DNA from: Macrostomum lignano
Lineage: Eukaryota
Length of the DNA: 64,000 nucleotides
Assembly (NCBI GenBank): GCA_002269645.1
Contig: NIVC01002446.1
Span: 1 to 64,000 of the forward strand
Reading direction: 5' to 3'
Below the pieces are notes generated by a model that saw only the letters and a program-made list of their open reading frames with translations, ran no database searches and was not told the DNA's origin. The translations under genes were made by a program, and so were the position numbers. The first letter of the stretch is position 1. Each line of letters opens with the position of its first letter. This document shows positions 3,760-64,000 of the stretch, piece by piece.

Positions 3760-27402
<23,643 letters not shown>

Positions 27403-33410: not shown

Positions 33411-33664
33411 GATTCTAATGCGCCCGGTTGATTGGTTGCTAGGAAACAATATTGATTTGGTAATCTGTGACGCTGCAACCGCTAGTTGTCTGATTGATGC
33501 CGGCTTGTATAGCAGGCTGGAGGTCAGTGTTGTAGCTATAGTTGCATGCAATGTAGAGAAATAGCTCAATGCTTGCTTGCTATAATTTTAGAATGAGCTC
33601 TACTGGTGTGGCCTGTGGGACATTAAACTAGCACTAGGGGCGCTGGGGGTTGAATATCATTGAT

Positions 33665-33676
33665 AAAGATAGATCT

Positions 33677-33726
<50 letters not shown>

Positions 33727-33859
33727 CTTTAGATAGATGGATAGATAATTAGATAGATAGATAGATAGATCTTTAGATAGATGGATAGATAAGATAGATA
33801 GATATATAGATCTTCAGATAGATGGATAGATAATTAGATAGATAGATAGATAGACAGAT

Positions 33860-33922
<63 letters not shown>

Positions 33923-33943
33923 AAGACAGACAGACAGACAGAC

Positions 33944-34022
<79 letters not shown>

Positions 34023-34050
34023 TAGATAGGTAGATAGATAGATAGATACA
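33665..34050. repeat. (GATA)n/(GACA)n compound microsatellite between RPL38 and HARS
   Basis: Direct reading. Confidence 0.96.
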
Positions 34051-34292
34051 AGCAGCAGACTGGACATAAGCTACAAAACACAGAAATAAGTGTCAAACAC
34101 CAACTCCGCACAAATTCCATCAGCAGAGCTATTTCAAGGCTAAGCAAACGCACTCTACTCTTAAGTGTGGCAGCGTGTCAACTCAATGTATTGACCAGTT
34201 GCTGTAGCCAAACAGCCACTACAATCAAGCTTAACGCAGCAATCATTTGAACACAAATGAGCAAGCTGTCACTCAGGAACTGGCGCCACAAT

Positions 34293-34565
<273 letters not shown>

Positions 34566-41809: not shown

Positions 41810-44800
41810 AGAAGCGTCATGTAAAAATCATAGAAGCGTCATATAAAAATCATAGATGCGTCATTTAAAAAATCATAGAAGCATCGTATAAAAATCATAG
41901 AAGCGTCATGTAAACAATCCTAGAAGCGTCATGTAAACAATCATAGAAGCGCCATGTAAAAATCATAGAAGCGTCATGTAAACAATCATAGAAGCGTCAT
42001 GTAAACAATCATAGAAGCGTCATGTCAAAATCATAGAAGCGTCATGTAAACAATCATAGAAGCGTCATGTAAAATCATAGAATCGTCCTGCCAAAATCGT
42101 AGAAGCGTCATGTAAACAATCATAGAAGCGTCATATAAACAATCATAGAAGCGTCATGTAAACAATCCTAGAAGCGTTATGTAAACAATCCTAGAAGCGT
42201 CATGTAAACAATCATAGAAGCGTTATGTAAACAATCCTAGAAGCGTCATGTAAACAATCATAGAAGCGTCATGTAAACAATCATAGAAGCGCCATGTAAA
42301 AATCATAAAAGCGACATGTAAAAATCATAGAAGCGTCATGTAAAATCATAGAATCGTCCTGCCAAAATCGTAGAAGCGTCATGTAAAAAATCCTTGAAGC
42401 GTCATGTAAACAATCATAGAAGCGTCATGAAACAATCATAGAAGCGTCATGTAAACAATCATAGAAGCGTCATGTAAACAATCCTAGAAGCGTCATGTAA
42501 ACAATCCTAGAAGCGTCATGTAAACAATCATAGAAGCGTCATGTAAACAATCCTAGAAGCGTCATGTAAACAATCATAGAAGCGTCATGTAAAAAATCAT
42601 AGAAGCGCCAAGTAAAAATCATAAAAGCGTCATGTAAACAATCATTCAAGCGTCATTTAAACAATCATAGAAGCGTCATGTAAACAAGCATAGAAGAACG
42701 TAAACAATCATAGAAGCGTCATGTAAACAATCATTCAAGCGTCATTTAAACAATCATAGAAGCGTCATGTAAACAAGCATAGAAGCGTCATGTAAAAATC
42801 ATAGAAGCGTCATGTAAACAATCATAGAAGCGTCATGTCAAAATCATAGAAGCGTCATGTAAACAATCATAGAAGCGTCATGAAACAATCATAGAAGCGT
42901 CATGTAAACAATCATAGAAGCGCCATGTAAACAATCATAGAAGCGTCATGTAAAAATCATAGAACCGTCATGTAAACAATCATAGAAGCGTCATGAAACA
43001 ATCATAGAAACGTCATGTAAAAATCATAGAAGCGTCATGTAAACAATCATAGAAGCGTCATGTAAACAATCATAGAAGCGTCATGTAAAATCATAGAATC
43101 GTCCTGCCAAAATCGTAGAAGCGTCATGTAAAAAATCCTTGAAGCGTCATGTAAACAATCATAGAAGCGTCATGAAACAATCATAGAAGCGTCATGTAAA
43201 CAATCATAGAAGCGTCATGTAAACAATCCTAGAAGCGTCATGTAAACAATCCTAGAAGCGTCATGTAAACAATCATAGAAGCGCCATGTAAACAATCCTA
43301 GAAGCGTCATGTAAACAATCATAGAAGCGTCATGTAAACAATCATAGAAGCGCCAAGTAAAAATCATAAAAGCGTCATGTAAACAATCATTCAAGCGTCA
43401 TTTAAACAATCATAGAAGCGTCATGTAAACAATCATAGAAGAATGTAAACAATCATAGAAGCGTCATGTAAACAATCATTCAAGCGTCATTTAAACAATC
43501 ATAGAAGCGTCATGTAAACAAGCATAGAAGAATGTAAACAATCATAGAAGCGTCATGTAAACAATCATTCAAGCGTCATTTAAACAATCATAGAAGCGTC
43601 ATGTAAACAAGCATAGAAGCGTCATGTAAAAATCATAGAAGCGTCATGTAAACAATCATAGAAGCGTCATGTCAAAATCATAGAAGCGTCATGTAAACAA
43701 TCATAGAAGCGTCATGAAACAATCATAGAAGCGTCATGTAAACAATCATAGAAGCGCCATGTAAACAATCATAGAAGCGTCATGTAAAAATCATAGAAGC
43801 GTCATGTAAACAATCATAGAAGCGTCATGAAACAATCATAGAAACGTCATGTAAAAATCATAGAAGCGTCATGTAAACAATCATAGAAGCGTCATGTAAA
43901 CAATCATAGAAGCGTCATGTAAACAATCATAGAAGCGTCATGTAAACAATCATAAAAGCGCCATGTAAAAATCATAAAAGCGTCATGTAAACAATCATAG
44001 AAGCGTCATGAAACAATCATTCAAGCGTCATTTAAACAATCATAGAAGCGTCATGTAAACAAGCATAGAAGAATGTAAACAATCATAGAAGCGTCATGTA
44101 AAAATCATAGAAGCGTCATGAAACAATCATAGAAGCGTCATGTAAAAAATCATAAAAGCGTCATGTAAAAATCGTAGAAGCGTCATGTAAAAATCATAGA
44201 AGCATCATGTAAAATCATAGAAGCGTCATGTAAAAATCATAGAAGCGTCATGTAAAATCGTAGAATCGTCCTGCCAAAATCGTAGAAGCGTCATGTAAAA
44301 AATCATAGAAGCGTCATGTAAAAATCATAGAAGCGTCATGTAAAATCATAGAATCATCCTGCCAAAATCGTAGAAGCGTCATGTAAAAAATCCTTGAAGC
44401 GTCATGTAAACAATCATAGAAGCGTCATGAAACAATCATAGAAGCGTCATGTAAACAATCATAGAAGCGTCATGTAAACAATCCTAGAAGCGTTATGTAA
44501 ACAATCCTAGAAGCGTCATGTAAACAATCATAGAAGCGTTATGTAAACAATCCTAGAAGCGTCATGTAAACAATCATAGAAGCGTCATGTAAACAATCAT
44601 AGAAGCGCCATGTAAAAATCATAGAAGCATCATGTAAACAATCATAGAAGCGTCATATAAAAATCATAGAAGCGTTATGTAAAAATGATAGAAGCGTCAT
44701 ATAAAAAATCATAGAAGGGTCATGTAAACAATCATAGAAGCGTCATATAAAAATCATAGAAGCGTCATGTAAACAATCATAGAAGCGTCATGAAACAATC

Positions 44801-45480
44801 ATAGAAGCGTCATGTAAACAATCATAGAAGCGTCATGAAACAATCATAGAAGCGTCATGTAAACAATCATAGAAGCGCCATGTAAAAAATCATAGAAGCG
44901 TCATGTAAACAATCATAGAAGCGTCATGTAAAAATCATAGAAGCGTCATATAAAAATCATAGATGCGTCATGTAAAAATCATAGATGCGTCATGTAAACA
45001 ATCATAGAAGCGTCATGTAAACAATCATAGAAGCGTCATGTAAACAATCATAGAAGCGTCATGTAAAAAATCATAGAAGCGTCATGTAATGAATCATAGA
45101 AGCGTCATGTAAACAATCATAGAAGCGTCATGTAAACAATCATAGAAGCGTCATGTAAAAATCATAGAAGCGTCATGTATAAAATCATAGAAGCGTCATG
45201 TAAACAATCATAGAAGCGTCATGTAAAAAATCGTAGAAGCGTCATTTAAAAATCATAGAAAGCGTTATTTAAAAAAATCATAGAAGCGTCATGTAAAAAA
45301 TCATAGAAGCGTCATGTAAACAATCATAGAAGCGTCATGTAAAAAATCATAGAAGCGTCATGTAAAAATTATAGAAGCGTCAAGAAAAAATCATAGAAGC
45401 GTCATGTAAAAAAAGTCATAGAAGCGTCATGTTAAAATCATAGAAGCGTCATGAAAAAATCATAGAAGCCTCATTTAAAA
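41810..45480. repeat. 21-23-bp satellite (~3.6 kb) inside Helitron unit 1
   Basis: AATCATAGAAGCGTCATGTAAAC unit with variant higher-order blocks. Confidence 0.97.
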
Positions 45481-46391
45481 ACTAAGGAAAGTGTCATTTA
45501 AAAAATTAAGAAGCATCATGGTAGAATAAAAGAAGCGTCATGTCAGACATGAAGGGTGTCATGTAAAAATAAATGCAGCTATAATGCTGTGCTGGGGAGA
45601 AAAACTGAGACGTTAAGGCTCTCAGAGAATAACTGAGATTACGGGGGGGGGGGGGTTGCTGAGATGTCAAAGCAAAAGTCAGAAGCTACTTCAAAGTTCA
45701 TGTACTTTACTCAATTTTTTTATTACATTCTTTGTTGGCTCGCCACGGGGGGGGTCGCTGATAGAAGAAGAGTCATGTAAAAAATAAAAGTAGCACTATG
45801 TATACATAAAAGAAAAGTCATGTCGAAGTTAAAAGATTCATTTGGGAATTGCTATGATGTCAAAGCTTGGAGGGAATCGTTACAGTGCTGTGATTCTTAA
45901 AGAAGGAATCACTAAAATGTCAAGGCTTAGGGGAGAAGAATTGCTGAGATTCAAGGCTTTAGGTTGGGTTAAAGTTAGGTTTAGGTCAGGTGTGGGTTGA
46001 GGGTTATATTTTATCGGGTTTCAAGGTTAACGGGGGATTTTTCAGATTTCAAGGTTTATGGAGGCCATCGCTGACATGTCAAGGCTTACGGGGGAATAGC
46101 TGAGATGTCAAGGCTCACGGGGTATAAATGAGATTTCAAAGCTAAAGTCAGAAGCTACATGTAAACAATCATGTAAAGTTTATTGAAAACTTTTTATTAC
46201 ATTATTTGATGCCTCCTCAGGGGAGGGATCGCTGATAAAAAAAGCGTAATGTAAAAAATAAAAGAAGCTTCATGTCGAAGTTAAGAGATTCATTTGGGAA
46301 TCCCTACGATGTCGAGGCTTGCAGGAAATCGCTATAATGCTGTAGCAGTGCTATAATGACTCTTAGAGAGAATTACTGAAATTTCAATGCT

Positions 46392-46425
46392 TTAGGGTTA
46401 GGGTTAGGGTTAGGGTTAGGGTTAG
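46392..46425 (+). repeat. Interstitial (TTAGGG)5 tract
   Basis: Five perfect TTAGGG plus TTAG; a degenerate version at ~45958-46005. Confidence 0.9.
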
Positions 46426-47269
46426 AAGGTTGACAGATATTTTTAGATTTCCAAGGCTTATTGGGGGCATTGCTGAGATGTCAAGGGGGGGAGTTGATAT
46501 GTTAAAGCTTGTGGTGGGGAATTACTGACATGTCAAGGCTTACAAGGTTTGACAGGAGATTTTTTAAGATTTCAAGGATACATGTAGCTTATTAAAAAAA
46601 CGTGTAGCGATTGCATTTCTTTGGCTCCCCAACGGGGGGCGTAGATTGCTAGTCCTATATACTAAAAATGAGTTGTCTGTGGGTAGGTAGGTAGGTAGGT
46701 ATGCGATAGATTTCAGAAAAAATGGCTCAACCGATTTTCTTCAAACTTGCACCATTCGATCAGAAATTTTCCTGGGACGGTACATGCATCTTGGCTAAGA
46801 AATTGCTCAATTTTAAAGGGATTAAATATTCGAAAAACATGCTTTTTTGCAAAGGTCAAGCAGCTCTTTCGACCTGAAATGCATTGTAAGAATGCTAGAG
46901 AAAAAACTGACTGACTGAATTCCGATTGTGATAAAGATTGCATCACAACAAGTTGAAAACAGTACCGAAGAAATGCACACACGACTTGATTTAAATTGCG
47001 TAACCATATTGCTAACTTAAATTGAGACTGATACTGGCTGACTGAGAAATTGATTATGTCATAACTTTTTACTCCAATTGACTTGCTGTAAGAATTGAAT
47101 TATAAGGGCCACAATTCATGTTCTCCAATTGAAAAGAGATAGCCCTGATGCGAACAGACTGGAATGCTAATGTAGCGACCTGGGTTCGAATCATAGTAGT
47201 GCAAAAAGATTTTTTTATTAAAACACCTTAAAAACACAACAAAACTGCTAAACATCAAAGAAGCGCAAT

Positions 47270-49650
47270 GTCAAACATAGAAGAGCCAACATATCGAACA
47301 TAAAAGAGTTACCATGTCAAACATAAAAGAGCTACCATGTCGAACATTAAAGAGCTACCACGTCGAACATTAAAGAGCCACCATGTCGAACATAAAAGAG
47401 CCACCATGTCAAACATAAAACAGCCACCATTTCGAACATTAAAGAGCCACCATTTCGAACATTAAAGAGCCACCATTTTGAACATTAAAGAGCCACTATG
47501 TCAAACAATTAAGAGCCACCATGTCAAACATAAAAGAGCCAACATGTCAGACATTCAAAAGCCACCGTATCAAACATAAAAGAGTTACCATGTAGAACAA
47601 AAAAGATCCACCATGTCAAACATTTAGGAGCCACCATGTCAAACATAAATGTGACTTTGTGTCAAACATTAAAGAGCCACCATTTCGAACATTAAAGAGC
47701 CACTATTTCGAACATTAAAGAGCCACCATGTCGAACATAACAGAGCTACCATGTCAAACATTAAAGAGCCACCATGTCAAACATTCAAAAGCCACATTGT
47801 CAAACATTAAAGAGCCATTATGTCGTACATTAAAGAGCCACCATTTCGAACATTAAAGAGCCACCATGTCGAACATAAAAGAGCCACTATTTTGAACATT
47901 AAAAAGCCACCATTTCGAACATAGAAGAGCCACCATGTCGAACATTAAAGAGCCAACATGTCAAACATAAAAGCGCCACCATGTCAAACCTAAACGAGCC
48001 ACCATGTCAAATATTTAATAGGCACCATGTAAAACATATAAGTGACTTTATGTCAAACATAAAAGAGCCACCATTTCGAACATTAAACAGCCACCATTTC
48101 GAACATTAAAGAGCCACCATGTCGAACATAAAAGAGCCACTTTTTCGAACATTAAAGAGCCACCATTTCGAACATTAAAGAGCCACCATGTCGACCATAA
48201 AAGAGCCACTATTTCGAACATCAAAGAGCCACTATGTCAAACATAAAAGAGCCAACATGTCAAACATAAAAGAGCCAACATGTCAAACATTTAGGAGCCA
48301 CCATGTCAAACATAAATGTGACTTTGTGTCAAACATTAAAGAGCCACCATTTCGAACATTAAAGAGCCACCATTTCGAACATTAAAGAGCCACCATGTCG
48401 AACATTAAAGAGCCACCATGTCGAACATAAAAGAGCCACCATGTCAATCATTAAAGAGCCACCATGTCAAACATAAAAGAGCCACCATTTTGAACATTAA
48501 AGAGCCACTATGTCAAACATAAAAGAGCCAACATGTCAGACATTAAAAAAGCCACCGTATCAGATATAAAAGAGTTACCATGTAGAACAAAAAAGAGCCA
48601 CCATTTCAACAAAAAAGAGCCACCATGTCAAACATGAAAGAGCCACCATGTCAAACACAAAAGAGCCAACATGTCAAACATAAAGAGCCACCATATCAAA
48701 CATTTAAGAGCCACCCTGTCGAATATCAAAGAGCAACCATGTCGAACATTAAAGAGCCACCATGTCTAACATTAAAAGTCACCATGTTAAACATTAGAGA
48801 GCCACCATATCAAGCATAAAAGAGCCACCATGTCAAACCAAAAAGAGCCACCATGTCGAAAATTTAAGAGCCAAAATGTAGAATATAAAAGAGCCACCAT
48901 GTCAAACCTAAAAGAGCCACCATGTCGAACACTTAAGAGCCACAATGTAAAATATTAAAGAGCCACCATGTAAAACAAAAGAGCCACCATGTTAAACATA
49001 AAAGAGCCACCATGTAGAATATTAAAGAGCCACTATGTTGAACATTAAACAGCCACCATGTCAAACCTAAAAGAGCTACCATGTCAACATAAAAGAGCTA
49101 CCATGTCAAACATTAAACAGCCACCATGTCAAACCTAAAAGAGCTACCATGTCAACATAAAAGAGCTACCATGTCAAACATTAAACAGCCATCATGTCAA
49201 ACCTAAAAGATCCACCATTTCGAACACTTAAGAGCCACAATGTAGAATATTAAAGAGCCACCATGTCAAACATTTAAGAGCCACCATGTCGAACATAAAA
49301 GAGCTATACCATGAAGAACATTAAAGAGCCACTTTGTCGATCATTAAAGAGCCACTATGTCAAACAATAAAGAGCCACCATGTCAAACATTTAAGAGCCA
49401 CCATGTCAATTATATATGTGTCTTTATGTCATACATTAAAGAGCCACCATTTCGAACATTAAGGAGCCACCATGTCAAACATTTAAAAGCCACCTTGTCA
49501 AACATTAAATAGCCACTTTGTCGAACATTAAAGGGCCACTGTGTCAAACATAAAAGAGCCACCATGTCAGACATTAAAAAGCCATCGTTTCAAACATAAA
49601 AGAGTTGCCATGTAGAACATAAAAGAGCCACCATGTCAAACATAAAATTT
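47270..49650. repeat. 21-bp satellite (~2.4 kb) inside Helitron unit 2
   Basis: AAAGAGCCACCATGTCAAACAT-type unit. Confidence 0.96.
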
Positions 49651-49734
49651 ACACAATTTCAAACGTAAAAGTAAGCGAATTTTAAAGGAGCCACTATAAT
49701 GCTAAGGAAATTGTCGCACTAGCTACTTATTGTC

Positions 49735-50375
49735 TGGTGGATGCTTGCTATTTGGGGATGCTATCTATGTAGGGGATGCTTGCTATCTGGGGGATGCTTG
49801 CTATCTGGGGGATGCTTGCTATCTGGGGGATGCTTGCTATCTGGGGGATGCTTGCTATCTGAGGGATGCTTGCTATCTGGGGGATGCTTGCTATCTGGGG
49901 GATGCTTGCTATCTTGGGGATACTTGCTATCTGGGGGATGCTTGCTATCTGGGGGATGCTTGCTATCTGGGGGATGCTTGTTATCTGGGGGATGCTTGCT
50001 ATCTGGGGGATGCTTGCTATCTGAGGGATGCTTGCTATCTGGGGGATGCTTGCTATCTGGGGGATGGTTGCTATCTAGGGGATGCTTGCTATCTGGGGGA
50101 TGCTTGCTATCTGGGGGATGCTTGCTATCCGGGGGTTGCTTGCAATCTGGAGGATGCTTGCTATCTGGGGGATGCTTGCTATCTGGGGGATGCTTGCTAT
50201 CTTGGGGATGCTTGCTATCTGGGGGATGCTTGCTATCTGGGGGATGCTTGCTATCTGAGGGATGCTTGCTATCTGGCGGTGCTTGCTATCGGGGGGATGC
50301 TTGCTACCTGGGGGATGCTTGCAGTCTGGGGGATGCTTGCTATTTGGGGTCGATGCTTGAATGCTGTCTGAGGAT
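49735..50375. repeat. 18-bp minisatellite inside Helitron unit 2
   Basis: GGGGATGCTTGCTATCTG unit; a degenerate 20-bp relative at 39225-39460. Confidence 0.96.
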
Positions 50376-52343
50376 GCTTGCTGTCTTGGGATGTTTTGTT
50401 TTTAGAGGGAATGTCTGTTGTTGTTTTTTGAAGGTTTTATTTCGCTGTCTATTTGTTTTTTGTAAAAAACAAGGATTCTATCCAGATGTCCCCCATCGGG
50501 GGGCGAAGATTGCTAGTATTTGCTAAACAGTCAGTTAAGAATGATAAAATAGACTTCTAAAACCAAAGAGCCGAGCCGTGGCATTCTAATGTATTTCAAT
50601 CACAAGACACGTGAAAATATACGGAGAATAAAAAATTTACATAGAATCCTAATTTTCTGAACTAAAAGCTTTATAAATATCGATAGAGCAATAAAAAAGG
50701 CACAACATATCAAAAGATGAGCACTGGATCTGCCTCCTATCAAAAGTAATAGCAATTTTTGTGCTGAAAAAATGAAAATTTCCTATCTCCGTAGTGTATT
50801 TTTTCGGGAAAAAGTGCCTTCAAAAATTTTCTAAGAAACGAGGTTTCCCGTCCTTCTACTTAAGTCGTCCTTGATACTGCCACGCAGTCACTTGTCAAGC
50901 TCGGACAGCTAAAAGGGTAATGCATAAATTTCGACGGAAAGTTCTTGTGGTTTTCTAAAACACATGATTTCACTCACTCAGAAGCAGATATCAAGCAACT
51001 TTAGTCCCTAAAAAAGCTCTCGCCTCAAAGTCATCTGCCAACCTACTAACACTGATCATTTGCTGGCCTAATAAATAGGCCATTAGATCGGCCTTTTGGT
51101 TCTTCATCGGAGTGGAAGGATTTGTTTGCCAGAGAGTTCGACAGCGTTAGAATAGGTGATAATCGGATGGAGCGGTGTCAGGGCTGTAAAGTGGATGAGG
51201 CAGAATGCTTGATCACCTTAGCTTATTTCTATGGTCGCCGAATTTTTTAAAATGAAAGTAAGCGTAGTTTTGGCGCGGCTTGTCTAGTCGAGGCCAAGTA
51301 GAAGTTTACATTAGCGAGCAAATACGGCGGGGCGAGATGCTGCTAAACCATGGTTAAAGCCCAAGTGGATGCCAACTTAGCCCCTAAATTGAAGCGATCG
51401 ATGTAACAGAGCAGCGCTTCAACTGTAGCTCTAACTGTTTCGCTAGTAAGATTAACTAGCGAAAGTGCCGCTCTGATACATGTAACACCACTTCCATTTC
51501 GGAACTTAGTTGACATCCTCTTTAATGTTACTTTCACTAATGTCAGTAATTCCCGGGGTACGAGATAACCCCCGTGACTGCTCAACGAGCTTGGGCTTGT
51601 GCAGTCAGCCAGCAACGTATGAATGTAGGTGCGTCTGTGCTGCACCAATCGCGTCTCATCGACGATCACCACGGTAGCATATTTCTATCTTCTATTCAGT
51701 AGCATTTGTAGCATAAAGAGTCATGCATATTTAAGAAGCATTATATTATCATCGAAAGAGATTATCTATTGCTCATATTTCCAGCTAGGGTTTTGGTCAA
51801 GGCTCAGCGCTTTCCTTGGGCGTTCACGCCCATACAAGATTCATTCCGGCGCCGATGCGCGGCGTCGTTTCAGAATGCCGCCCAGCAGTCCGCGGTTATT
51901 CCGCTTCGAGTTGCTTAATTCGTCGCTTCCAGAAAGTTGCGCTCTTGTTCCACAACAAGACGACGCATCTTGAAAGCCCGAATACGAATGCAGTTGTTGC
52001 TACCAGCGTAGGAGGGAGCACACAGTTGTTGTTGATTTGCATCGGACGTTTGACATGCTCGAAAAACAAGTTGAGCCGCTGGCGGACGAGCGTGTCATCG
52101 AAGCGGCACTCTATAATAGCAGCGCCGGCCTGGTACGTCCAAGTGAACTGTAGCGCCGTTGATGACTCCAGTTGGCGGGCAGACAAAATCATCCACGCCG
52201 AATTAATCAACTTGACATTTTGTCAAGTGTCTTCTGGCTGACTTCAGCGACTTGGACTCTGTTGGTTAATGTTTTCTCCCAGACACTTGGGTGCGCCCTG
52301 AGACGCTGTTTTTATGACCTTGCAGTTTATGATCAGCTTTTAT

Positions 52344-52766
52344 TATAGTATTTGTCATGCTATCTCAGCCTAGAGACATCCAAACTCAGCCAGCCCATCT
52401 CAACAGTGCGATTTTTTACGTAAGCCAGTCAAGTTTTACCATAGACATGCTTCTTAAGGCCATGCTATCTCAGCCTGGGACATGCAATCTCAGCCACTTT
52501 TCAGATTCTTACTGACTTTTCTTGCTGCGTTCATTCATTGCTGTTTGTTGCCATTTCATGTCACGTTACAGAAATGATAGCATTGAGATCTGTTTGCAAT
52601 TGAAATCTATATTGGCTGAGATTGCATGTCCCAGGCTGAGATAGCATGGCCTTAAGAAGCATGTCTATGGTAAAACTCGACTAGCTCGAGCCAAAAAACG
52701 CATTGCGGAATGGGGCTGGCTGAGTTTGGATGTCCCTAGGCTGAGATAGCATGACAAAAGCTATAT
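52344..52766. mobile_element. MITE with ~145-bp TIRs
   Basis: TTTGTCATGCTATCTCAGCC...CATGCAATCTCAGCCA (52351-52497) is inverted at 52613-52758. Confidence 0.8.
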
Positions 52767-52986
52767 TAATCAGCCTTTATAGATTATAATTTATAAACCA
52801 TTATCGCAAAAATGCACTAAGGATGGTCTCGCCCACCGCCTGGAGCAATGTCTGCAGAACTTGCCCATCACAGAACGAGAGGCAGCATAGAAAAAACAGG
52901 ACAACATGTTGAAGTGAAATTTTTTGCTATTATTGAATTATAAATACGGCCTAGATAGAATATGTAGCAGTCTTTTTAGAAATCTT

Positions 52987-53180: not shown

Positions 53181-54455
53181 CTTATCTGAGGCTTGGTGCT
53201 TCGCATTATGGCACAAACGCATGTAAGCGTTGGATTTGAATGCAATAGCATTCGTCAGTATTTTTATGTTTGATGAACACTTTGTTCCTTTATCGTATTT
53301 TGCTTGTTAGTGGTGAAAGTAAAAAAACAGGTAAAAAAGAGAAAAGCGACAAGTGATTTGCTTTTGAGCACATTCAATAATTTTTCTGCTAAACGACACA
53401 AACTGCGATAATTCCGCGTATACTACTTAACTAGTAATTTGGTGCTACATTAGGCAAAGATAATAAATATACTAATTTAAACAGTGCTGATGTCTAACGC
53501 TTTTTTTACACAAATTTACTGTACAGGAGTTGAATATAGGACAGTTAAAATTGTACAAAGACGCAGCTAGACAGGCATTTATAGCTATACTCAATTTCTG
53601 GGCGTTGCGCTCATTAGAAAGAAGATACGAGCAGAAAGAAGGTACTATATATTTTTAGACATGACAGCTTTGTGCAAAGTTAGTTTTAGATCAGAAGTTC
53701 TCTTTTTTCATACGGTTTAAGTCTATGATAGCTCCTACATCGCAATTTTAAGCAAAATAATTATGAACATTGTTTAACCTAACATTGTTTAACTAATAAA
53801 AATAATATAATACTAGTATGATAGGGTTGGTTAGCCAGGCGGCCATCTACCAGCCAGACAAGTGTTACATGTAATATTTGGACCGCACTTTGTATTTGTG
53901 ACTGCTTCGTCACGTTCGAGTCTTTTCGCACTCACCGACGAGCAATCAACTTCATAGATTGGAAAGCTCGATGCTGTGACATGAGCGAGGCCAAGAGCAT
54001 AGAGTTGGAGCCTAGGATTTGCAGTTAATTTCTATGTATTTGCACTGTTCATGTATCTTACATTTACATGAACACATTACATGAAACTGGGGCTGTCTAA
54101 TCAATGTCAGCTGGCTGGTAAACACTGACTGGCAAATTTCTGGCTGGGAAAACTGCGTAGACCCTGTGCAGCTTTTTTTGGTTATTCAGGTACAGAAATG
54201 CAACGAAAATATACAAGTACAGCATCGCACAGCACCCATCAGCAGTTCCTCGTTCAAAGCTTCATGCCGATTAGCAAATAACAAACAAGCAAAAATGGAG
54301 GAAAGCGTCAAATCGGACACGATTTCGAACACAACCGCTTGGCCCAGATCTAACTCGTAGCTCGTACATTGGATACAAAAGCCAAACAGCAGTTGATGTG
54401 AACAATGTTCAAAGCTAAAATTATGAGCTTACAGTGCATCCAGTCAATCTAAAGT

Positions 54456-55829
54456 TTATTGGCGATCGCAACAATCGTAAAACTGTTCATAAACAAAACA
54501 GGTGCATTCGAAGCTGCAGTAATCACGATAGCGTTGCTGCAAATCCGTAACTCCCAGGCTAGTGTCGTGGATTTCGTCGGCAAAATTTTTTATCATCTCG
54601 CCACACGAGTTAAGCTGCCTGACCCAAAGTTCTACCTCGGATGCAGAATTTTGTGATTGAGGCGCGGAGCCATCTGTGAGCCAATTAAACGGAGGAATTG
54701 AGCGAAGCCAATCAAGAAACGGTTTCTTGATCGAATCAAATAAACTTATTTGCGTCTCATCCCTGGCGGGTGTGTAACTTTTCCTAAGTTTCTCGACATC
54801 AGTAATAGTTGTCTCGAAATCATCCTTGAAGCTCTGGACAGCGGATGAAAATTCGCCAATGGCCTGTCTGAACGAATCCAGCTTTTCCATGAATTCTGTG
54901 TGCTTATCCGGTGACGGGCTTTGTTGAAACTCCTGCAACAGCCTGAAGACTTCCCTGCTGTCCTTAGCATAAGTGGCAGCTGATAAGCGAAGTTGTACAA
55001 CCGAGTTTGTTATCGCCTTTGTGTTAATTCCGGAGATCTCTAGCTTCGGAGCTACGTGGTTCCACCTTTCAGCTATTATTTCTAAATCATTCGGGTGTAT
55101 ACCTTTTTGCAGAAGCGATAGGGTTCTTGCGTCTTTGATGAGTTTAACGGCTTTTTTGTAAAAGAGTGTGATTTCAAAAGTTTTTTTTGCTCCGGCACTT
55201 TTAAAATCAGCAAGCTGCGCCTCTTCGGGCAGACTCCGAATCTTACTAAAGGTTTCGTTGAACTTTTTCGCAGAGAAAATTATCTTATATGTGACTCTCT
55301 CCCAAGAGGCGAATGACTTGCTTGTTGATCCAAATAACTGTCCTAAAGCGCTTTTCTCTGCGTTAAGGAAATCTAAGAACTTTTCACTCTCCGCCTTTCC
55401 CTTTAAAAGCTTCTCTGTGTGCTCGGTTTTGCTTTGCTGCTCCAGAAGCCAGATACAAATCTCTAGTTGGCTGCACAACAGACTGATCACCTGGTCTTTT
55501 GAAAGCTCCATTACTTTATTAAGTAGTTCGGCATTCTCACCAAAGTCCGTTAGTCTGCTAAGAATATCATTGGCAATCTGTATGACTTTTCGAAGTTCCT
55601 GTTTAAATACGAAGAATTCCATTTTTTCAGGGACTCTATTTTCTTCCATTAGACCGTTGACCTGGATCTCAGCTACTGGCCTCAATATTTCACACAGGCT
55701 GGGTCTCACCTCAGTCAGCAGAAGTATGATTTTCAGTGCTGACGCGACAGCTTTAGCGTCGAATGACGGTTTGGGCTCCTCCGGCTTCGGCTCCGGCTCC
55801 GATGTCTTCTTGAACCATATATTGCCCAT
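54456..55829 (-). CDS. Intronless 457-aa helical protein of unknown function (paralog A), MG- start
   Basis: Uninterrupted ORF; first ATG at 55829 (MGNIWFKK), the track start at 55889 is TTG. TATAAATA on the minus strand at ~55937-55944. Homologous to 57822-59171. Confidence 0.82.
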   Translation of the reverse strand: MGNIWFKKTSEPEPKPEEPKPSFDAKAVASALKIILLLTEVRPSLCEILRPVAEIQVNGLMEENRVPEKMEFFVFKQELRKVIQIANDILSRLTDFGENAELLNKVMELSKDQVISLLCSQLEICIWLLEQQSKTEHTEKLLKGKAESEKFLDFLNAEKSALGQLFGSTSKSFASWERVTYKIIFSAKKFNETFSKIRSLPEEAQLADFKSAGAKKTFEITLFYKKAVKLIKDARTLSLLQKGIHPNDLEIIAERWNHVAPKLEISGINTKAITNSVVQLRLSAATYAKDSREVFRLLQEFQQSPSPDKHTEFMEKLDSFRQAIGEFSSAVQSFKDDFETTITDVEKLRKSYTPARDETQISLFDSIKKPFLDWLRSIPPFNWLTDGSAPQSQNSASEVELWVRQLNSCGEMIKNFADEIHDTSLGVTDLQQRYRDYCSFECTCFVYEQFYDCCDRQ

Positions 55830-56749
55830 AATATCTATTTTACTTTTGTTAGCAGCCTTGCAATGCAACTTGATATTGGTATGCCACAAAAGAGTCTGTG
55901 TTTGTTAAATAAGTAAGCATGAAACATCTCTCTCAACTTATTTATAAGTTAAGAGAGATGTTATAAGTAAAATGAGTAACTATCCAATGTACAATGGCTT
56001 CTTTGAACGTCGCATAGCTCGTAGACGATTTTTTAACGTCTTATTCGTATCGCTACTATGGGTAGCACAATGCGCTTCGTGTATCGTTTTTTACGAGCTT
56101 AGCTACGATAAAAGTAATTAAGCCAATCAAACTCACGGCTAAAACTAAATCTCTGCGCGTGTTTTACAAGTCTGAATTACGAGTGTGCTCTGCTATCAAC
56201 TCCCGCAATCAATCGTGAGCTTATGTTTTATGCATCGCAGCGGAATTTGATAAAATGCTGTGTAGGATGCAGTACGAGGCAGATCAAATGCAGTACGAGG
56301 TTCTTTACCAGTTACATGGTCAGTTTAAAGCAATTTTTTAAATATGAATACTCACGAGGAACAAATTAACGAAGATTTAGCTGAACATCCATGGTTTCAG
56401 GGGGACATGTGTGTTGCGGGCTCAAAGGGCGACAGTCGGAACGCAGCTGACCTGCAGCTGACCCCTGAAACACAAAACCCAAATCAATTTCTGTACATGA
56501 ATTCACAAACACATGACCGCTTGAAGAATCTAAACTGTATGGCCTTTTTGGCCTCTCTGCAGAGATAATAGCCGGAACAATTATCGAAAAATGCTCGTAA
56601 GCAGCACTACTTTTAGTAGCACATAATCAAACAACAGAAGAGTCAATCGCCCCAATTTACGAGCTAAATATCTAAAAATAAACGATGCATTTGGTTCAAT
56701 TTTGTTGACTAATAAACCAATAGTATATAGACTTTATATAGTGACTTTT

Positions 56750-56990
56750 TGAACTACATCTGCCGTGTCAGTCTGGAAGCTGGGCTGGGATCTGCACCCA
56801 AAAAAACTTTTTTGCTTCATCTCTGCTCGGAAGTGCAACAAACCGATTCGGTGAATTTTCTGTAGCTAACTGTGTACCCAGCGATTTGTCATTCTTAGCG
56901 TCGTAGAAATTGAGAAAAAAATCACCCCGTTAGCTGCTAATTGATTCGCTGCAGAATGGCACGACCGATTTTTTTAGGAAATATTGGGAA
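56750..56990 (+). repeat. Dispersed repeat, second copy at ~63698-63900
   Basis: AACTACATCTGCCGTGTCAGTC(T/C)GGAAGCTGGGCTGGGATCTGCA...GCAGAATGGC shared. Confidence 0.8.
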
Positions 56991-57264
56991 AGCTTTCAGC
57001 TAAAAAAATGAAGCCGAAAGTTGAGCTGCAGACAAAACGGTTAAGAACCGACTGAACTGCAACAAGAGGCCACGGACATGTCAATAACGCAGAGTGCATC
57101 CTTCGAGCACAATCCAGAACCCGTTGTCCTTTTTATCTATCATCGTGAAAATTTTAATAGGAACCTTTGCGATCTTGACAGAATATTTTATTATAACTAC
57201 TACTTATTAGTACTACTGTTTGATTAGGATGCTTAGAAGTGGTTCGATATATTTTTATAGCACT

Positions 57265-57465
57265 TGCAAAACGAATTTTTATCAAAGAAGCTGCGTCCAA
57301 AGTGAAATTTAAAGAAATAGCGTGGGAGCATAGTGTAGTTATTTTTGAGCATTTGTTTGAATCGGAAAAGACGAAAAAGCATTTCAACTTCTATTTCAAC
57401 GCATTTAAACAAAAACGATAGCCTAAAAACCTTCTTTTAATTTGAAATTGTAATTGAAATACGTT
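57265..57465 (+). repeat. Dispersed AT-rich repeat, second copy at ~61946-62165
   Basis: TTGCAAAAC(G/A)AATTTTTATC(A/G)AAGAAGCTGC...ATAGCGTGGGAGCAT...GTAGTTATTTTTGAGCATTTGTTT shared. Confidence 0.8.
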
Positions 57466-57821
57466 ATAGTTGGTCTCATCAAACACACCGCCCCACTTTC
57501 TGGCACAATTTGGCAAAAGTTCGGTTTCTCTAAAATTTCTGATGGGACAGGCCAAAGCCGTCGAGAATTAGGAGTCCGCAACCCCAAGGGGCTCCAATAT
57601 TGGTGTCTTGGTCTACTGGGTAGGTGCCTCTGTCTCTACCTGTCTCTAATAGATCTTCGAAGGCTAAGCCAATAGATAGACTACTAAGAGGTGGCAAAAG
57701 TTGAACTTCTAGAGCCAAACGGACCATGTTCTTTAAACACATACTCGTAAAAGGTTTCAAAACAGAATTAAGAATAATAAAAGTGTTCGAGTCAGGCTTC
57801 AAAACAGACAGACAAGGACAG

Positions 57822-59171
57822 TTAGTGCGCATCGAAGTACAAGTCACCACCTGAATAGTAACAACCTCTGTCGGTTGCGATGCTGCGATGCAACTCGTTG
57901 ACTCCCTCGAAGCCAGTGCGAGCTTCTTCGGTATTTTCTATTATCCGCTCGAGAAAACATCTTAGCAAATTATCGCAGACAACAACCGGCTCTTCCCTAG
58001 TGATCATTTGACATACGAGTTTTCGTATTTTCGACCAAATCCATTTAAAAGGGTTGGTAAAGCCTTCATCGTTTGTATAATCCCGAAGTTTGATTTTTCC
58101 GACTGCTTCGATCGTTTTCTCTATATTTTCCCGCAAAGCATTGACTTCGCAGCACAATTCACATCTCTGTTTCTTGAGCAGTTCGAGTTTATCTTTTAAT
58201 TTTCTTTGAATCTCAGGCGTTGGAGCTTTCTGGAATTCTTTCATCAGATTGCAGACCTCTTGATTGTATTTTCCAACGGTGACAGATACTGAACCCAGTT
58301 GTTTAATAGAACTTGTTACTCTTTCGGAATGGATTTTCAAGCTTGGAAATGATTTTAGCCATTCGCTCGCGTGATTCCATTCTTCGGTTAGTTTTTGGTA
58401 TTGCAATTGCTGATGACTGCTCTGTATAATTGATAAATTTCTTACAGTTTTTATTGTCTGCGGCGTTTGGATGCTGCTGTCACCAGCACATCCTGTAGTG
58501 CACTGTGTCGTTCCGCAGCCCCATCCAGTCGCCGCGTCAAACATAAATGTCGACTGGATCAAATCAGCCACATCTTTGCTCTCAAAGTCGCACAAGCGAG
58601 CCTCTTCAGTCAACTTCGGTAGATCCGCCAGACAGCTGTTAAACTGATCTACGGATGACATAACCTTGAGTGCGGCATCCTTCCAAAGTATAGCATGCGT
58701 GTCTATGCCGAAATTAAAAAAGTTAAGCCACGTGTCAAGAAACTGAAGCAGCTCGTCGCCCGCTTCCTTTGCGTTAAGAAAAGTTTCTGTAAGTTTCTTT
58801 CTGTTTGTGTCTTCTAGAAGCCAGATACAAATCTTCAGCTGACTGTTCAGTAGCTCGGCCAGCACTGTCTCGTTGGGGCAGCCGCTTTTCAGTTGTAAAT
58901 TGATTTGTTCGAACTGCTCCAGTTTGTCATAAATATTTTTGGCAGTTTCCACGACTTCGACCAGTCGATTTTTGAACATTACAAATTGATGCTTGGTGGA
59001 AATGTTGGTATTATTATTAAAATCCTGGATCAGCTCATCCATTGAAAGCGATACGAGAGGCTTCAGGCACTCGACCAGGCGGAATCTCACCTCATCGAGC
59101 CGAATAATAACGCTTGCTGTCGGCCTGGTGGCCTTAGAAACGACCGACGGCTTCGATTGCGAGCTTCCCAT
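57822..59171 (-). CDS. Intronless 449-aa helical protein of unknown function (paralog B), MGSSQS start
   Basis: Uninterrupted ORF sharing blocks with paralog A: LDEVRFRLVECLKP/LTEVRPSLCEILRP and LLNSQLKICIWLLE/LLCSQLEICIWLLE. Confidence 0.84.
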   Translation of the reverse strand: MGSSQSKPSVVSKATRPTASVIIRLDEVRFRLVECLKPLVSLSMDELIQDFNNNTNISTKHQFVMFKNRLVEVVETAKNIYDKLEQFEQINLQLKSGCPNETVLAELLNSQLKICIWLLEDTNRKKLTETFLNAKEAGDELLQFLDTWLNFFNFGIDTHAILWKDAALKVMSSVDQFNSCLADLPKLTEEARLCDFESKDVADLIQSTFMFDAATGWGCGTTQCTTGCAGDSSIQTPQTIKTVRNLSIIQSSHQQLQYQKLTEEWNHASEWLKSFPSLKIHSERVTSSIKQLGSVSVTVGKYNQEVCNLMKEFQKAPTPEIQRKLKDKLELLKKQRCELCCEVNALRENIEKTIEAVGKIKLRDYTNDEGFTNPFKWIWSKIRKLVCQMITREEPVVVCDNLLRCFLERIIENTEEARTGFEGVNELHRSIATDRGCYYSGGDLYFDAH

Positions 59172-59714
59172 GACTTATTGTAGTTTCCTTAACTAATTGT
59201 ATATTTTATTTGATACGCTATATCAGTCTGTTTGGTTTGCAATGCCCAGACATTAAGTATAGAGCTAGTTCCTTGTTCTTTCAGACTGGTATTATAAGTC
59301 AGTGTTCACTGCCAGTGCCAGACAACACTGAACAGACAAAGACCAAGGAAATTGAAATCGTCATCCCTGGCGGAGGGAGTAGGAATAAGACTTCACTATA
59401 GCTTAAGACCATGAGGAAAAACTTGTTTAGAAATGTACACTGTACTTGCCTAACACGGAACAATACGCTTTACGATGGTCAAATTCTTTTACGGTCCCAT
59501 ATTACTACTATTATTCGAGTACAGTAGTACGCGCATAGATGTACTGACCAATGGGCAATGGCCATTCCATATAGCAGTACAGAGTAAGTTCCCCCTAGGA
59601 TTCGACAATATGTACGTCTGAAGCAGATAGAGTCGAAGCGATTTCGCTAGTGGCTGCAATTTCTCGTTCTTAGAGACAGAATGCATTTAACTGCGCGGTC
59701 TGTCTCGAAATTCT

Positions 59715-60875
59715 GTCTGTCTGCCTGTCTTACTAGTCTGTCTTCGTGATGCTGTCTGCCTGTCTTACTAGTCTGTCTTCATGATACTGTCTGCCTGTCT
59801 TTACTAGTCTGTCTTCGTGATGCTGTCTGCCTGTCTTTACTAGTCTGTCTTCGTGATGCTGTCTGCCTGTCTTACTAGTCTGTCTTCGTGATGCTGTCTG
59901 CCTGTCTTATTAGTCTGTCTTCGTGATGCTGTCTGCCTGTTTTACTAGTCTGTCTTCGTGATGCTGTCTGCCTGTCTTATTAGTCTGTCTTCGTGATGCT
60001 GTCTGCCTGTCTTATTAGTCTGTCTTCGTGATGCTGTCTGCCTGTCTTACTAGTCTGTCTTCATGATGCTGTCTGCCTGTCTTACTAGTCTGTCTTCATA
60101 ATGCTGTCTGCCTGTCTTTACTAGTCTGTCTTCATAATGCTGTCTGCCTGTCGTACTAGTCTGTCTTCATGATGCTGTCTGCCTGTCTTTACTAGTCTGT
60201 CTTCATAATGCTGTCTGCCTGTCGTACTAGTCGTCTTCATGATGCTGTCTGCCTGTCTTACTAGTCTGTCTTCATAATGCTGTCTGCCTGTCTTACTAGT
60301 CTGTCTTCATAATGCTGTCTGCCTGTCTTACTAGTCTGTCTTCATAATGCTGTCTGCCTGTCTTACTAGTCTGTCTTCATAATGCTGTCTGCCTGTCTTA
60401 CTAGTCTGTCTTCATGATGCTGTCTGCCTGTCTTTACTAGTCTGTCTTCATAATGCTGTCTGCCTGTCTTTACTAGTCTGTCTTCGTGATGCTGTCTGCC
60501 TGTCGTACTAGTCTGTCTTCATGATGCTGTCTGCCTGTCTTACTAGTCTGTCTTCATAATGCTGTCTGCCTGTCTTACTAGTCTGTCTTCATAATGCTGT
60601 CTGCCTGTCTTACTAGTCTGTCTTCATAATGCTGTCTGCCTGTCTTACTAGTCTGTCTTCATAATGCTGTCTGCCTGTCTTACTAGTCTGTCTTCATGAT
60701 GCTGTCTGCCTGTCTTTACTAGTCTGTCTTCATAATGCTGTCTGCCTGTCTTTACTAGTCTGTCTTCATGATGCTGTCTGCCTGTCTTACTAGTCTGTCT
60801 TCATGATGCTGTCTGCCTGTCTTACTAGTCTGTCTTCATGATGCTGTCTGCCTGTCTTACTAGTCTGTCTTCATG
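59715..60875. repeat. 35-bp minisatellite, ~32 copies
   Basis: GCTGTCTGCCTGTCTTACTAGTCTGTCTTCATGAT unit. Confidence 0.96.
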
Positions 60876-60879
60876 ATAC

Positions 60880-61665
60880 GAGAGGTATGAGAGAAGAGAT
60901 GAGTGGGAGAGAGATATGAGTGGGAGAGAGATATGAGAGGAGAGAGGAGTGGGAGAGAGATATGAGAGGAGAGAGGAGTGGGAGAGAGATATGAGAGAGG
61001 AGAGGAGTGGTAGAGAGATATGAGAGGGGAGAAGAGTGGGAGAGATATGAGAGGGGAGAGGAGTGGGAGAGATATGAGAGGGGAGAGGAGTGGGAGAGAT
61101 ATGAGAGAGGAGAGGAGTGGAAGAGAGATATGAGAGGGGAGAGGAGTGGGAGAGATATGAGAGGGGAGAGGAGTGGGAGAGATATGAGAGGGGAGAGGAG
61201 TGGGAGAGATATGAGAAGGGAGAGGAGTGGGAGAGATATGAGAGGGGAGAGGAGTGGAAGAGAGATATGAGAGGGGAGAGGAGTGGGAGAGATATGAGAG
61301 GGGAGAGGAGTGGGAGAGATATGAGAGGGGAGAGGAGTGGGAGAGATATGAGAGGGGAGAAGAGTGGGAGAGATATGAGAGGGGAGAGGAGTGGAAGAGA
61401 GATATGAGAGGGGAGAGGAGTGGGAGAGATATGAGAGGGGAGAGGAGTGGGAGAGATATGAGAGGGGAGAGGAGTGGGAGAGATATGAGAAGGGAGAGGA
61501 GTGGGAGAGATATGAGAGGGGAGAGGAGTGGGAGAGATATGAGAGGGGAGAGGAGTGGAAGAGAGATATGAGAGGGGAGAGGAGTGGGAGAGATATGAGA
61601 AGGGAGAGGAGTGGGAGAGATATGAGAGGGGAGAGGAGTGGGAGAGAGATATGAGAGGGAGATGA
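60880..61665. repeat. 27-bp purine-rich minisatellite (29-bp variants)
   Basis: ATGAGAGGGGAGAGGAGTGGGAGAGAT unit. Confidence 0.96.
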
Positions 61666-63039
61666 TATATCAAGAGACCGCATCACTAGCTAGATATTAA
61701 TCAGCTTCTATCACTAGTGTCCCTATAGCAAAGTGAGAACAAAAACTTTTACAAAGACAGCGCAATAGTTACTGATTAGTTTTATTGTACCGAATCATAC
61801 GAGCGTAATGGTTCTCATCACAATGGTTCTCTGAGCTAAGTGTGTCAAAAATGTCAACCATCTGACCTCTTACTACGCTCGTAACTCGGCAGCTTATTAA
61901 TATCAAAGAAAAGGTCTTGATTAATATCAAAAAAGATTGATAGCTCTTGCAAAACAAATTTTTATCGAAGAAGCTGCAGCTAAAGTAAAATAATAGCGTG
62001 GGAGCATGATGTAGTTATTTTTGAGCATTTGTTTTAATCAGACAGAAAATACATACAGTAAAATTTTTATTTCAACGCATTTCAACAATAACAATCGAAA
62101 ACAAGTTTTCGCATTATTAAAAAACCTTGCTTTTTTATTTGAAAAAGTACGAAATACATTATAAAGGTAACTTATATTTCTTATAGTACTATAGCGAATG
62201 AAGTCTTTATTAATTATTTCTGCACTAAGGCGGAAGGCCTTTTAATTTCAATAGATGGTGTGGCAGCCACAGCACTTAAATAATCGGTAAGATTCCCAGC
62301 CAATTATTTATTCTCATCTTTACATACGACCATCTCCCAGTTGCAGTCAACCCCTTCACAGTGTTCTGAAAAATCATCTGACAAAACTTGCTCGCCCTTG
62401 CTGTGTGATCACTCACTCACTCCATCACTCCATTTCTTCATTTTCGCTCGCCCACCCGTTTTGCTTGCTACTGTTTGACCCTTAGTCTACCTGACTCCCC
62501 TGAGTGATGTCACATCCTACCTAAATTGACTCGTCCCCATCCACTTCTTTATTTTTGCACACGATCTCCACGTGATTATCTAAAAAGCACTATTTTTAGC
62601 AACGGTACAGTGACGTCAGAACTCCTGATGGCCAGAGTGAGACTGCCATGGCCATAGCCTTGGAGAGCATCACGTGATTAACCTTGTTTGACATTATTTT
62701 GCAAGGCCAGTCGAGAGGAAGCAAAAATTTGTGGAAATCTGTTGACCCTTGAGCGCTTGTATAGGTGCGTTCTCAAGCTCATACCGCTTGCAGAATTTAA
62801 CTGGGACTTTTGGCCTCCATTGGACGAGAAAGAGTCGAACACTACAGAGATCATCACTCTAAAAAACGTAATTCCGTAATTATTTACGCTTGTAGGTGGC
62901 ACTACTATTAGTAGCGCACTATCAAATAAAAGCAGAGTCAATCACCCCAAGGGATTTTATAGTGACTTTCTGAACCTTTGAAGCAAATCGTATTTGATAA
63001 GCATAATAGGTATTGGCTGAATACAATTAGCAGTGTGAT

Positions 63040-63399: not shown

Positions 63400-64000
63400 T
63401 CGGTTGAGTCGAAGTTGGCTGGCTCAACCATACATTATATTGTAATTTGTTGACTCTTGATGGGAACAATGTCGTATTTTTTTAACAACACTTGACAAAT
63501 ATATAAGAGTACGTACATGTAGATTCAAAGTAACAAAAGCAGATCTTCTCTGATTTATAGATAGTTATGCAAAGTTTATTTTTCGTGTTTGTAATAATAT
63601 TAGTCAGAATAAGTTTGCGTTTATTGCGTATTAATGGTTATGACAAATAGCAGAGCGATCCCAGACAAGACAGGCGCGCGATAATGAGCGGAAGAAGTCA
63701 ACTACATCTGCCGTGTCAGTCCGGAAGCTGGGCTGGGATCTGCATCGGGTACTCCCGGAAGTGCAACAATTTGCTTCTGTGAATTTTTTGTAGCTGACTG
63801 AATTGCTCGGTAGTTAATCATCGTTAGATTAGACATTGAAAAAGTCAACTCTTCAACTGAAATGTGATCCGCACTGGCTTTGCAGAATGGCTCGACCGAT
63901 TTCCCCAGAAAAAATCGGACAATTTCCAGCCATTTTTTAGCAAAACTTCAACCGAGAATATACGAGCGTAGTTATAAATATTAAAAAGGATAAGAACCGA

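Follow-up and report, generated by a model that had tools for sequence, protein, structure and literature searches.

The window analysed here is a stretch of 64,000 nucleotides of the Macrostomum lignano genome, base-for-base identical to bases 1–64,000 of contig NIVC01002446.1 (assembly GCA_002269645.1), and its coordinates are those of the contig. On the minus strand it carries two intronless genes, A and B, which encode diverged members of one protein family. Scanning for open reading frames (ORFs), the alignment of six family proteins and structural models, whose local confidence is given as the predicted local distance difference test score (pLDDT), yielded the following features of the pair.

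57822..59171, minus strand: gene A, an intronless coding sequence of 449 amino acids (aa), predicted all-alpha, starting with MGSSQSKPS (ORF scan)
59151..59171, minus strand: N-myristoylation consensus M-G-S-S-Q-S-K, codons 1–7 of A, followed by a basic, acid-free stretch
58812..58844, minus strand: family signature SQLKICIWLLE in A, residues 110–120, within a long helix of the modelled N-terminal bundle (six-sequence alignment, model)
57999..58052, minus strand: Trp-rich amphipathic segment of A, PFKWIWSKIRKLVCQMIT, residues 374–391, in the C-terminal third, pLDDT <50 (alignment)
55830..57821, no strand: spacer between A and B, 1,992 bp, without an ORF matching the family
54456..55829 from the first ATG, minus strand: gene B, an intronless coding sequence of 457 aa, predicted all-alpha, starting with MGNIWFKK (ORF scan)
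55440..55472, minus strand: family signature SQLEICIWLLE in B, residues 120–130 (alignment)
54678..54722, minus strand: Trp-rich segment of B, PFLDWLRSIPPFNWL, residues 370–384, pLDDT <50 (alignment)

By BLASTP, A and B were found to be colinear paralogues with 27% identity across 365 aa (E 4e-38). This bears out the original prediction, made from the sequence alone, of two co-oriented single-exon ORFs that are strongly diverged yet colinear. Both proteins are acidic, with isoelectric points of 5.6–5.8, and tblastn detected no third family copy in the 64-kb window. A 477-aa version of B, beginning at a TTG at 55889, was discarded as an artefact of the bacterial start rule. The intron-rich genomic background noted earlier was also correct, since the histidyl-tRNA synthetase (HisRS) gene of the window (29724–33569, minus strand; tRNA-synt_His and HGTP anticodon-binding domain) has at least four exons and the species mean is 4.9 introns per gene (PMC5730564).

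The same A-B arrangement with the same flanks was observed on two further contigs, NIVC01000469.1 (L002) and NIVC01001953.1 (L001). On L002, which is 95–99.8% identical to the window, A is intact (451 aa) and B is broken once by a 1.3-kb transposon. L001 contains A' (448 aa), B' (450 aa, PAA62292.1), a long interspersed nuclear element (LINE) and an extra A copy, A'' (447 aa). Intact A copies of 447–451 aa are present on L002, on L001 (two copies) and on L003. The protein identity between B' and B is 58%. A'', located at L001 18032–19375, is 77–80% identical to A and was found on L001 only.

The reading frames of the family are open across pairs that differ by 130–628 nucleotide changes and 6–14 in-frame indels. 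The alignment of B with B' shows 311 differences in 1,320 nucleotides and nine indel events, none of which breaks the frame; for A and B the count is 628 in 1,218, plus 14 in-frame indels, and both ORFs are open. Among the copies on the window and the sister contigs, all six ORFs are open at up to 24% nucleotide divergence. Neutral simulations kept an open frame in 0.4% of cases for A/A'' (p = 0.004), in 0.005% for B/B' (p = 5e-5) and in 0 of 20,000 for A/B. The six-sequence alignment contained 80 columns that are invariant across all family proteins, and the block SQL[K/E]ICIWLLE was near-invariant. In addition, B (63–89% identical to L001 at the nucleotide level) was more conserved than its own downstream flank. 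From the open frames judged against the neutral simulations, the conservation of B above its flank and the invariant columns, A and B are almost certainly a genuine, intact protein-coding family.

Nevertheless, the constraint on A and B is loose, and the family is fast-evolving, as had been expected. The ratio of nonsynonymous to synonymous substitution rates (dN/dS, Nei-Gojobori) was 0.39–0.60 among the closest A copies, 0.72–0.87 for comparisons with A'' and 0.78 for B/B'. Positive selection on B against neutral flanks was considered and rejected, conservation being higher in B than in the flank downstream of it.

The divergence of the two genes was found to be uneven along the locus. Between window and L001, identity is 96–98% over the upstream flank, A and most of the spacer. 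By sliding identity, the spacer matches L001 at 91–98% as far as about window position 56100 and then collapses; beyond that point B is 63–89% identical and the downstream flank of B is unalignable (≤57%). The sharp switch from 96–98% to <85% identity lies at about 56000–56200, just upstream of B. It marks a boundary left by recombination or gene conversion: each of the two loci, on the window and on L001, is a mosaic in which one part was recently homogenised and another is older. This accounts for a synonymous divergence (dS) of 0.075 for A/A' but 0.34 for B/B'; the high B/B' divergence is due to the older split, as indicated by this dS value and by the abrupt change of identity at about 56100. 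The M. lignano assembly holds 180 Mb in duplicated blocks (≥95% identity), which are due to extra chromosome copies (PMC5730564). Because the family copies share their flanks on the sister contigs, copy number tracks the duplicated genome, not transposition.

The deposited annotation of the pair is incomplete. Gene A is unannotated in GenBank on all three contigs, and the exact A proteins are missing from the protein collection. Only three annotated family proteins exist in M. lignano, all B-type and entered as 'hypothetical protein', with B-type gene models on each of the three contigs. As the GenBank annotation of this assembly was built solely from RNA-seq and transcriptome evidence (PMC5730564), these models show that B is transcribed. 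The annotation pipeline dropped transcripts overlapping repeats (PMC5730564), and A abuts minisatellites; the missing A models are therefore not evidence of silence. The identifiers Mlig018364, Mlig005982 and Mlig030117 were not found in the literature texts or in the M. lignano supplementary files searched.

B has 100% sequence identity to PAA82453.1 (BOX15_Mlig018364g1, 'hypothetical protein'), an entry assigned to the sister contig L002. There the model hangs on the interrupted copy, and GenBank calls its 1,295-bp insertion (L002 10417–11711) an intron. The supposed intron is in fact a non-autonomous transposable element: its terminal inverted repeats (TIRs) are perfect over 14 bp, its subterminal repeats are G-rich, and the target-site duplication is 8 bp long. 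GT-AG boundaries cannot be placed on it. An 8-bp target-site duplication is typical of hAT elements, and the insertion is hAT-like. UniRef labels B as 'DHC_N1 domain-containing protein'; this label was rejected, since Pfam DHC_N1 was not listed for B even at E ≤10.

The sole GenBank model on the window contig is BOX15_Mlig005982g1, which relies on an interval inside the B frame; this interval and the putative expression signals of the pair, read from the sequence, were located as follows.

54674..55709, minus strand: GT..AG interval of 1,036 nt in the B ORF, the intron in BOX15_Mlig005982g1 (PAA57777.1)
59292..59299, minus strand: TATA-like ACTTATAA, ~120 nt 5' of the start codon of A, a putative promoter element
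55961..55968, minus strand: TATA-like ACTTATAA, ~130 nt 5' of the start codon of B, with a second copy 12 nt downstream, a putative promoter element
54455..54460, minus strand: AATAAA, overlapping the B stop codon, a putative poly(A) signal

The splice in BOX15_Mlig005982g1, whose boundaries, length and phase were recomputed, shifts the frame and leaves a 53-aa product. The donor-like sequence GAG/GTGAGA (the slash marks the splice position) is common to B, B', A and A'', because it encodes a conserved Glu-Val-Arg, whereas the acceptor is present only in the window copy of B. The 1,036-nt splice is therefore a minor or aberrant form that is not conserved, and conserved regulated splicing within B was rejected, the acceptor being absent from B'. 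Upstream of B' lies ACCTATAA. In the 230 bp upstream of A'', a 17-bp tandem repeat replaces the region that bears the TATA-like motif in other copies.

No relative beyond M. lignano was recovered in a full HMMER scan with an A+B profile against 1.84 billion representative proteins, in which B' and a B fragment of 53 aa were the only matches. In word-indexed searches of 5.8 billion clusters, A gave no match, B gave only itself and B', and the six-sequence profile gave only B at E ≤0.5. Pattern scans of IMG/VR and JGI metagenomes gave no confirmed relative, and the protein-collection searches contained no prokaryotic or metagenomic protein relatives of A or B. In Pfam, the six members produced only scattered sub-threshold matches of coiled-coil type, and none was common to more than two of the six; these matches, among them DUF4698, DotZ, a tape-measure family and MutS_III, were discarded. 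Profile matches among PDB sequences to a myosin/EB1 coiled-coil fusion (E 0.006) and to the long helix of influenza HA2 (E ~0.02) were likewise rejected, as the alignments reflect heptad and composition similarity. Comparison of the N-terminal, middle and C-terminal parts by hhalign revealed no convincing internal duplication, the best pair being the N-terminal part against the C-terminal tail with 24% probability. Given the coding constraint and the lack of any homologue found outside M. lignano, A and B are a very small, taxonomically restricted ('orphan') family, so that the lineage-specific character proposed for them was upheld across the protein representatives and clusters, Pfam, PDB sequences, IMG/VR and the JGI metagenomes. 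The family is likely confined to Macrostomum or Macrostomorpha.

AlphaFold models of A and B were built from alignments of only 2–3 sequences, and the weakness of the models is attributed to this. The AlphaFold2 model of A was all-helical with pLDDT 56 and a predicted template modelling score (pTM) of 0.41, including a helix at 101–119/121–152. That of B was all-alpha with pLDDT 64 and pTM 0.49, and its residues 21–160 reached pLDDT 72–93; the bundle helices in the confident part were 25–53, 70–103, 111–162 and 171–195. The models suggest, with fair confidence, that the N-terminal ~190 residues form a long antiparallel four-helix bundle. The remainder would comprise a second helical region at about residues 240–360 and a poorly defined C-terminal third. 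The helical character, the common SQLxICIWLLE block and the lack of a transmembrane helix that had been noticed earlier all agree with the models, the alignment and the hydropathy values given below.

The best Foldseek matches of B were designed four-helix bundles of ~196 residues, with a template modelling score (TM) of 0.49 normalised by target, probability 1.00 and E 0.06–0.09. These designed maquette and reaction-centre proteins (PDB 8d9p, 6z0c) resemble the N-terminal ~190 residues of B in having four or five helices of 25–52 residues. However, they are designed, share 11–15% identity and cover less than half of the protein, which points to generic topology and not to homology. Foldseek against PDB returned no natural family at E ≤0.001, both query models being weak, and no meaningful match was obtained among the viral structures of BFVD (E ≥0.009, TM ≤0.23). 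The F-BAR domains of PACSIN, FES, srGAP2 and GAS7, as well as arfaptin, also appeared in the Foldseek lists. The BAR and F-BAR proteins are, like A and B, elongated helical modules, and they act at the cytosolic membrane face; but the Foldseek probability was ≤0.38, with TM ≤0.24 by target (≤0.16 by query) and rmsd >35 Å, and neither Pfam BAR nor FCH matched in the A/B family.

The PROSITE-type pattern for N-myristoylation is G-{EDRKHPFYW}-x(2)-[STAGCN]-{P}. All four A copies start with MGSSQSK and match this pattern, with a net charge of +4 in residues 2–25. In contrast, B (MGNIWFK) and B' (MGNHLYS) fail it, with Phe or Tyr at position 6, and have a net charge of –1 in the same residues. Gly2 is invariant in all six family proteins. 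The N-myristoylation signal originally proposed for both genes, as weaker in B, thus stands for the A copies and not for the B-types. On the basis of the motif, the A-type proteins are probably N-myristoylated at Gly2. Membrane association, which had been attributed to the family as a whole, appears plausible only for the A-type, from the motif together with the basic N-terminus. The MGSSQSK start and the basic, acid-free stretch of A are reminiscent of the SH4-type N-termini of Src-family kinases and of MARCKS switches, a likeness of mechanism only. Past the first ~25 residues, however, there is no likeness to kinases or MARCKS, and the B-types are net acidic.

The late Trp-rich amphipathic segment described earlier is present in both proteins and aligned between them. 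Its hydrophobic moment was 0.49–0.59 in A and, depending on the register, 0.25–0.62 in B. These segments rank among the more amphipathic 18-mers, yet they are no more amphipathic than several core helices. The Cys/Tyr-rich C-terminus was not conserved, as B' has no Cys there, and it was dropped as a shared feature. The maximal Kyte-Doolittle mean over 19 residues was 1.05 for A and 1.41 for B, and no stretch reached transmembrane grade, for which the usual threshold is ~1.6. No signal peptide or hydrophobic hairpin was found in A or B, and both are soluble proteins.

The surroundings of the pair had been described as a transposon nest. This did not hold, as the repeats near A and B are mainly minisatellites (23 bp × 166, 23 bp × 104, 18 bp × 35, 35 bp × 33 and 27 bp × 27), with unit lengths mostly of 18–35 bp; minisatellites likewise occupy much of the window. 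The ORF scan of the 64-kb window found no transposon-type ORF of ≥200 aa, and no reverse transcriptase or integrase ORF was present in it. The third-codon-position G+C content (GC3) of genes A and B is 0.48, against 0.54–0.75 in the neighbouring HisRS exons. Overall G+C drops abruptly from ~50% to ~34% at the 5' end of HisRS (window 33500–34500), beside an (AGAT)n microsatellite at 33667–34048.

Directly upstream of A lie two minisatellites, at 59717–60877 (35 bp, 33 copies) and 60926–61659 (27 bp, 27 copies). Both arrays also precede A on the two sister contigs, with differing copy numbers, and they create long spurious ORFs on both strands. Within the spacer, short direct repeats at 56752–56872 and 57310–57419 correspond, with 79–98% identity and in swapped order, to 63700–63800 and 61986–62095. 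They match the region upstream of the minisatellites and are either copies of a dispersed repeat or what is left of the duplication that gave rise to A and B. A near-palindrome was observed downstream of B, at a distance of about 1.7 kb, with arms at 52340–52496 and 52613–52769 (157 nt, 89% complementary) and a 116-nt loop; it is shared with L002 and may be a foldback or an element resembling a miniature inverted-repeat transposable element. Farther away, window 41171–50517 (~9.3 kb; 32–39% GC, strong A-over-T skew) is missing from L002. It consists largely of 23-bp arrays at 41810–45543 (166 copies) and 47250–49647 (104 copies) and an 18-bp array at 49733–50359. On L001, an ORF for a 935-aa non-long-terminal-repeat retrotransposon protein (14588–17395, minus strand; Exo_endo_phos and RVT_1) is inserted between B' and A''.

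We tentatively favour the reading that A and B are an orphan tandem pair of cytosolic helical-bundle proteins confined to M. lignano, in which A is docked to the membrane and the two proteins serve as a peripheral scaffold or adaptor. A would be N-myristoylated at Gly2 during translation, and the myristate would act jointly with the first 25 residues, which are basic and free of acidic side chains, to dock it on the cytosolic face of the membrane. B, which has Gly2 but otherwise lacks the motif, would reach the membrane, if at all, by helix-bundle association with A; alternatively, its own aromatic-basic N-terminus (IWFKK) might provide the route. Without enzymatic activity, the pair would then act as a peripheral-membrane scaffold or adaptor in some cell type specific to Macrostomum, and not as a pore-former. 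This role, though the likeliest one, is held with low confidence. A bolder proposal is that A and B are founding members of an undescribed fold or family restricted to macrostomids, a two-component module of the cytosolic membrane face with A anchored and B recruited by helix-bundle pairing, which might remodel membranes or organise a cell type (e.g. sperm) and would have no counterpart in other animals; this must be regarded as speculative and unlikely.

Several observations weigh against the tandem-pair scaffold. The myristoylation of A, its membrane binding and the A-B association were all deduced from sequence, and both structural models are weak overall, so that no fold-based argument is firm. 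The dN/dS values near 0.8 for B/B' and A/A'' are close to neutral, and one allele-like B copy carries a transposon insertion, suggesting dispensability. The expression of A is putative, as no transcript model is deposited for any of its copies. Finally, the apparent restriction to M. lignano may reflect sampling, since M. lignano seems to be the only Macrostomum species with a proteome in the collections.

Much of the same evidence could be read differently. In Macrostomum, genes related to reproduction evolve apart more rapidly than other genes, and their counterparts in other species are more difficult to detect (PMC7336406). A and B might be such fast-evolving genes, of testis, sperm or other reproductive tissue, with a structural or membrane-associated role that would be compatible with the scaffold mechanism. 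Their fast evolution fits the rapid divergence described for this class (PMC7336406), as do dN/dS of 0.4–0.9 and the B/B' identity of 58%; the tandem duplicates and the change in copy number represented by A'' on L001 are also in line with it, and divergence driven by sexual selection would explain the lack of detectable homologues. However, fast evolution and lineage restriction suit many other gene classes equally, and the three gene identifiers did not appear in the literature texts or the M. lignano supplements searched. We consider this explanation unlikely. It is improbable that the genes are young or decaying ORFs of little or no function, with frames open by recency and near-neutral dN/dS as a sign of relaxed constraint. 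The dN/dS of 0.72–0.87 for A/A'' and B/B', the B copy broken by a transposon, the replaced promoter region of A'', the frame-shifting 53-aa splice form as the sole model on the window contig and the unannotated state of A would all be expected of such ORFs. But A and B have remained open and colinear over 628 differences in 1,218 nucleotides and 14 in-frame indels, an outcome seen in none of the 20,000 simulations, and the B/B' result (p = 5e-5), the 80 invariant columns and the conservation of B above its downstream flank also speak against decay.

The original prediction had itself pointed to immune or membrane-disrupting effectors, which would resemble alpha-pore-formers or ApoL/MLKL and insert after a conformational change, and had allowed for a viral or horizontal origin; neither proposal is supported. 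A and B do share with ClyA/HlyE, Hbl/Nhe, ApoL and MLKL/HeLo the size class, high helicity and possible membrane association, and their size and helical content resemble those of ClyA/Hbl-type toxins in particular; the lipidation motif of A, the Trp-rich amphipathic segment, the fast evolution, the tandem duplication and the repeat-rich location could be added in favour. Nevertheless, the signal peptide, hydrophobic hairpin or tongue and transmembrane segment of such proteins are absent (maximal hydropathy 1.05/1.41), Pfam (all six members as queries) and PDB sequences (single sequence and profile as queries) gave no match to HlyE/HBL, ApoL, MLKL_N or HeLo at E ≤1, and the suggested structural comparison found no ClyA/Hbl/Nhe, ApoL or MLKL/HeLo structure in the top 50 Foldseek PDB matches, with models that are weak (pLDDT 56/64). 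The amphipathicity of the Trp-rich segment does not exceed that of the bundle helices, and the repeat context is minisatellites. An effector function is accordingly improbable. A Met-Gly myristoylation signal followed by a helical body occurs in retroviral Gag/matrix proteins, and an origin of A and B from a mobile element or virus, e.g. as a myristoylated Gag/matrix-like or a nucleoprotein-like helical protein, would explain this combination in intronless ORFs of an intron-rich genome, along with their GC3 of 0.48 against 0.54–0.75 in HisRS exons and the LINE between copies on L001. But A and B contain no Gag, capsid, zinc-knuckle, reverse transcriptase, integrase or transposase domain, have no adjacent pol and are bracketed by neither long terminal repeats nor TIRs. 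BFVD offered no structural match and IMG/VR no relative, and the searches for prokaryotic and metagenomic proteins were negative. The copies are few and syntenic, lying in conserved flanks on the sister contigs and not dispersed, and M. lignano has just three annotated family proteins. Such an origin is very improbable.

It follows from the analysis that an unusual ORF pair in a repeat-rich neopolyploid genome consists of constrained genes, for which no relative was found in roughly 15 billion proteins. The more exciting toxin, immune and viral readings are set aside. The value of the finding is modest; orphan genes are common in flatworms, and the family, new and largely unannotated as it is, would not surprise a specialist. 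For M. lignano there are gains in annotation, as A is missing from GenBank, B of the window contig is reduced to a 53-aa model, and full-length B is placed on an interrupted copy. If A and B do form a two-component, lipid-anchored scaffold in a lineage-specific cell type, they would offer a tractable case of orphan-gene function, as transgenic and in situ tools exist for M. lignano.

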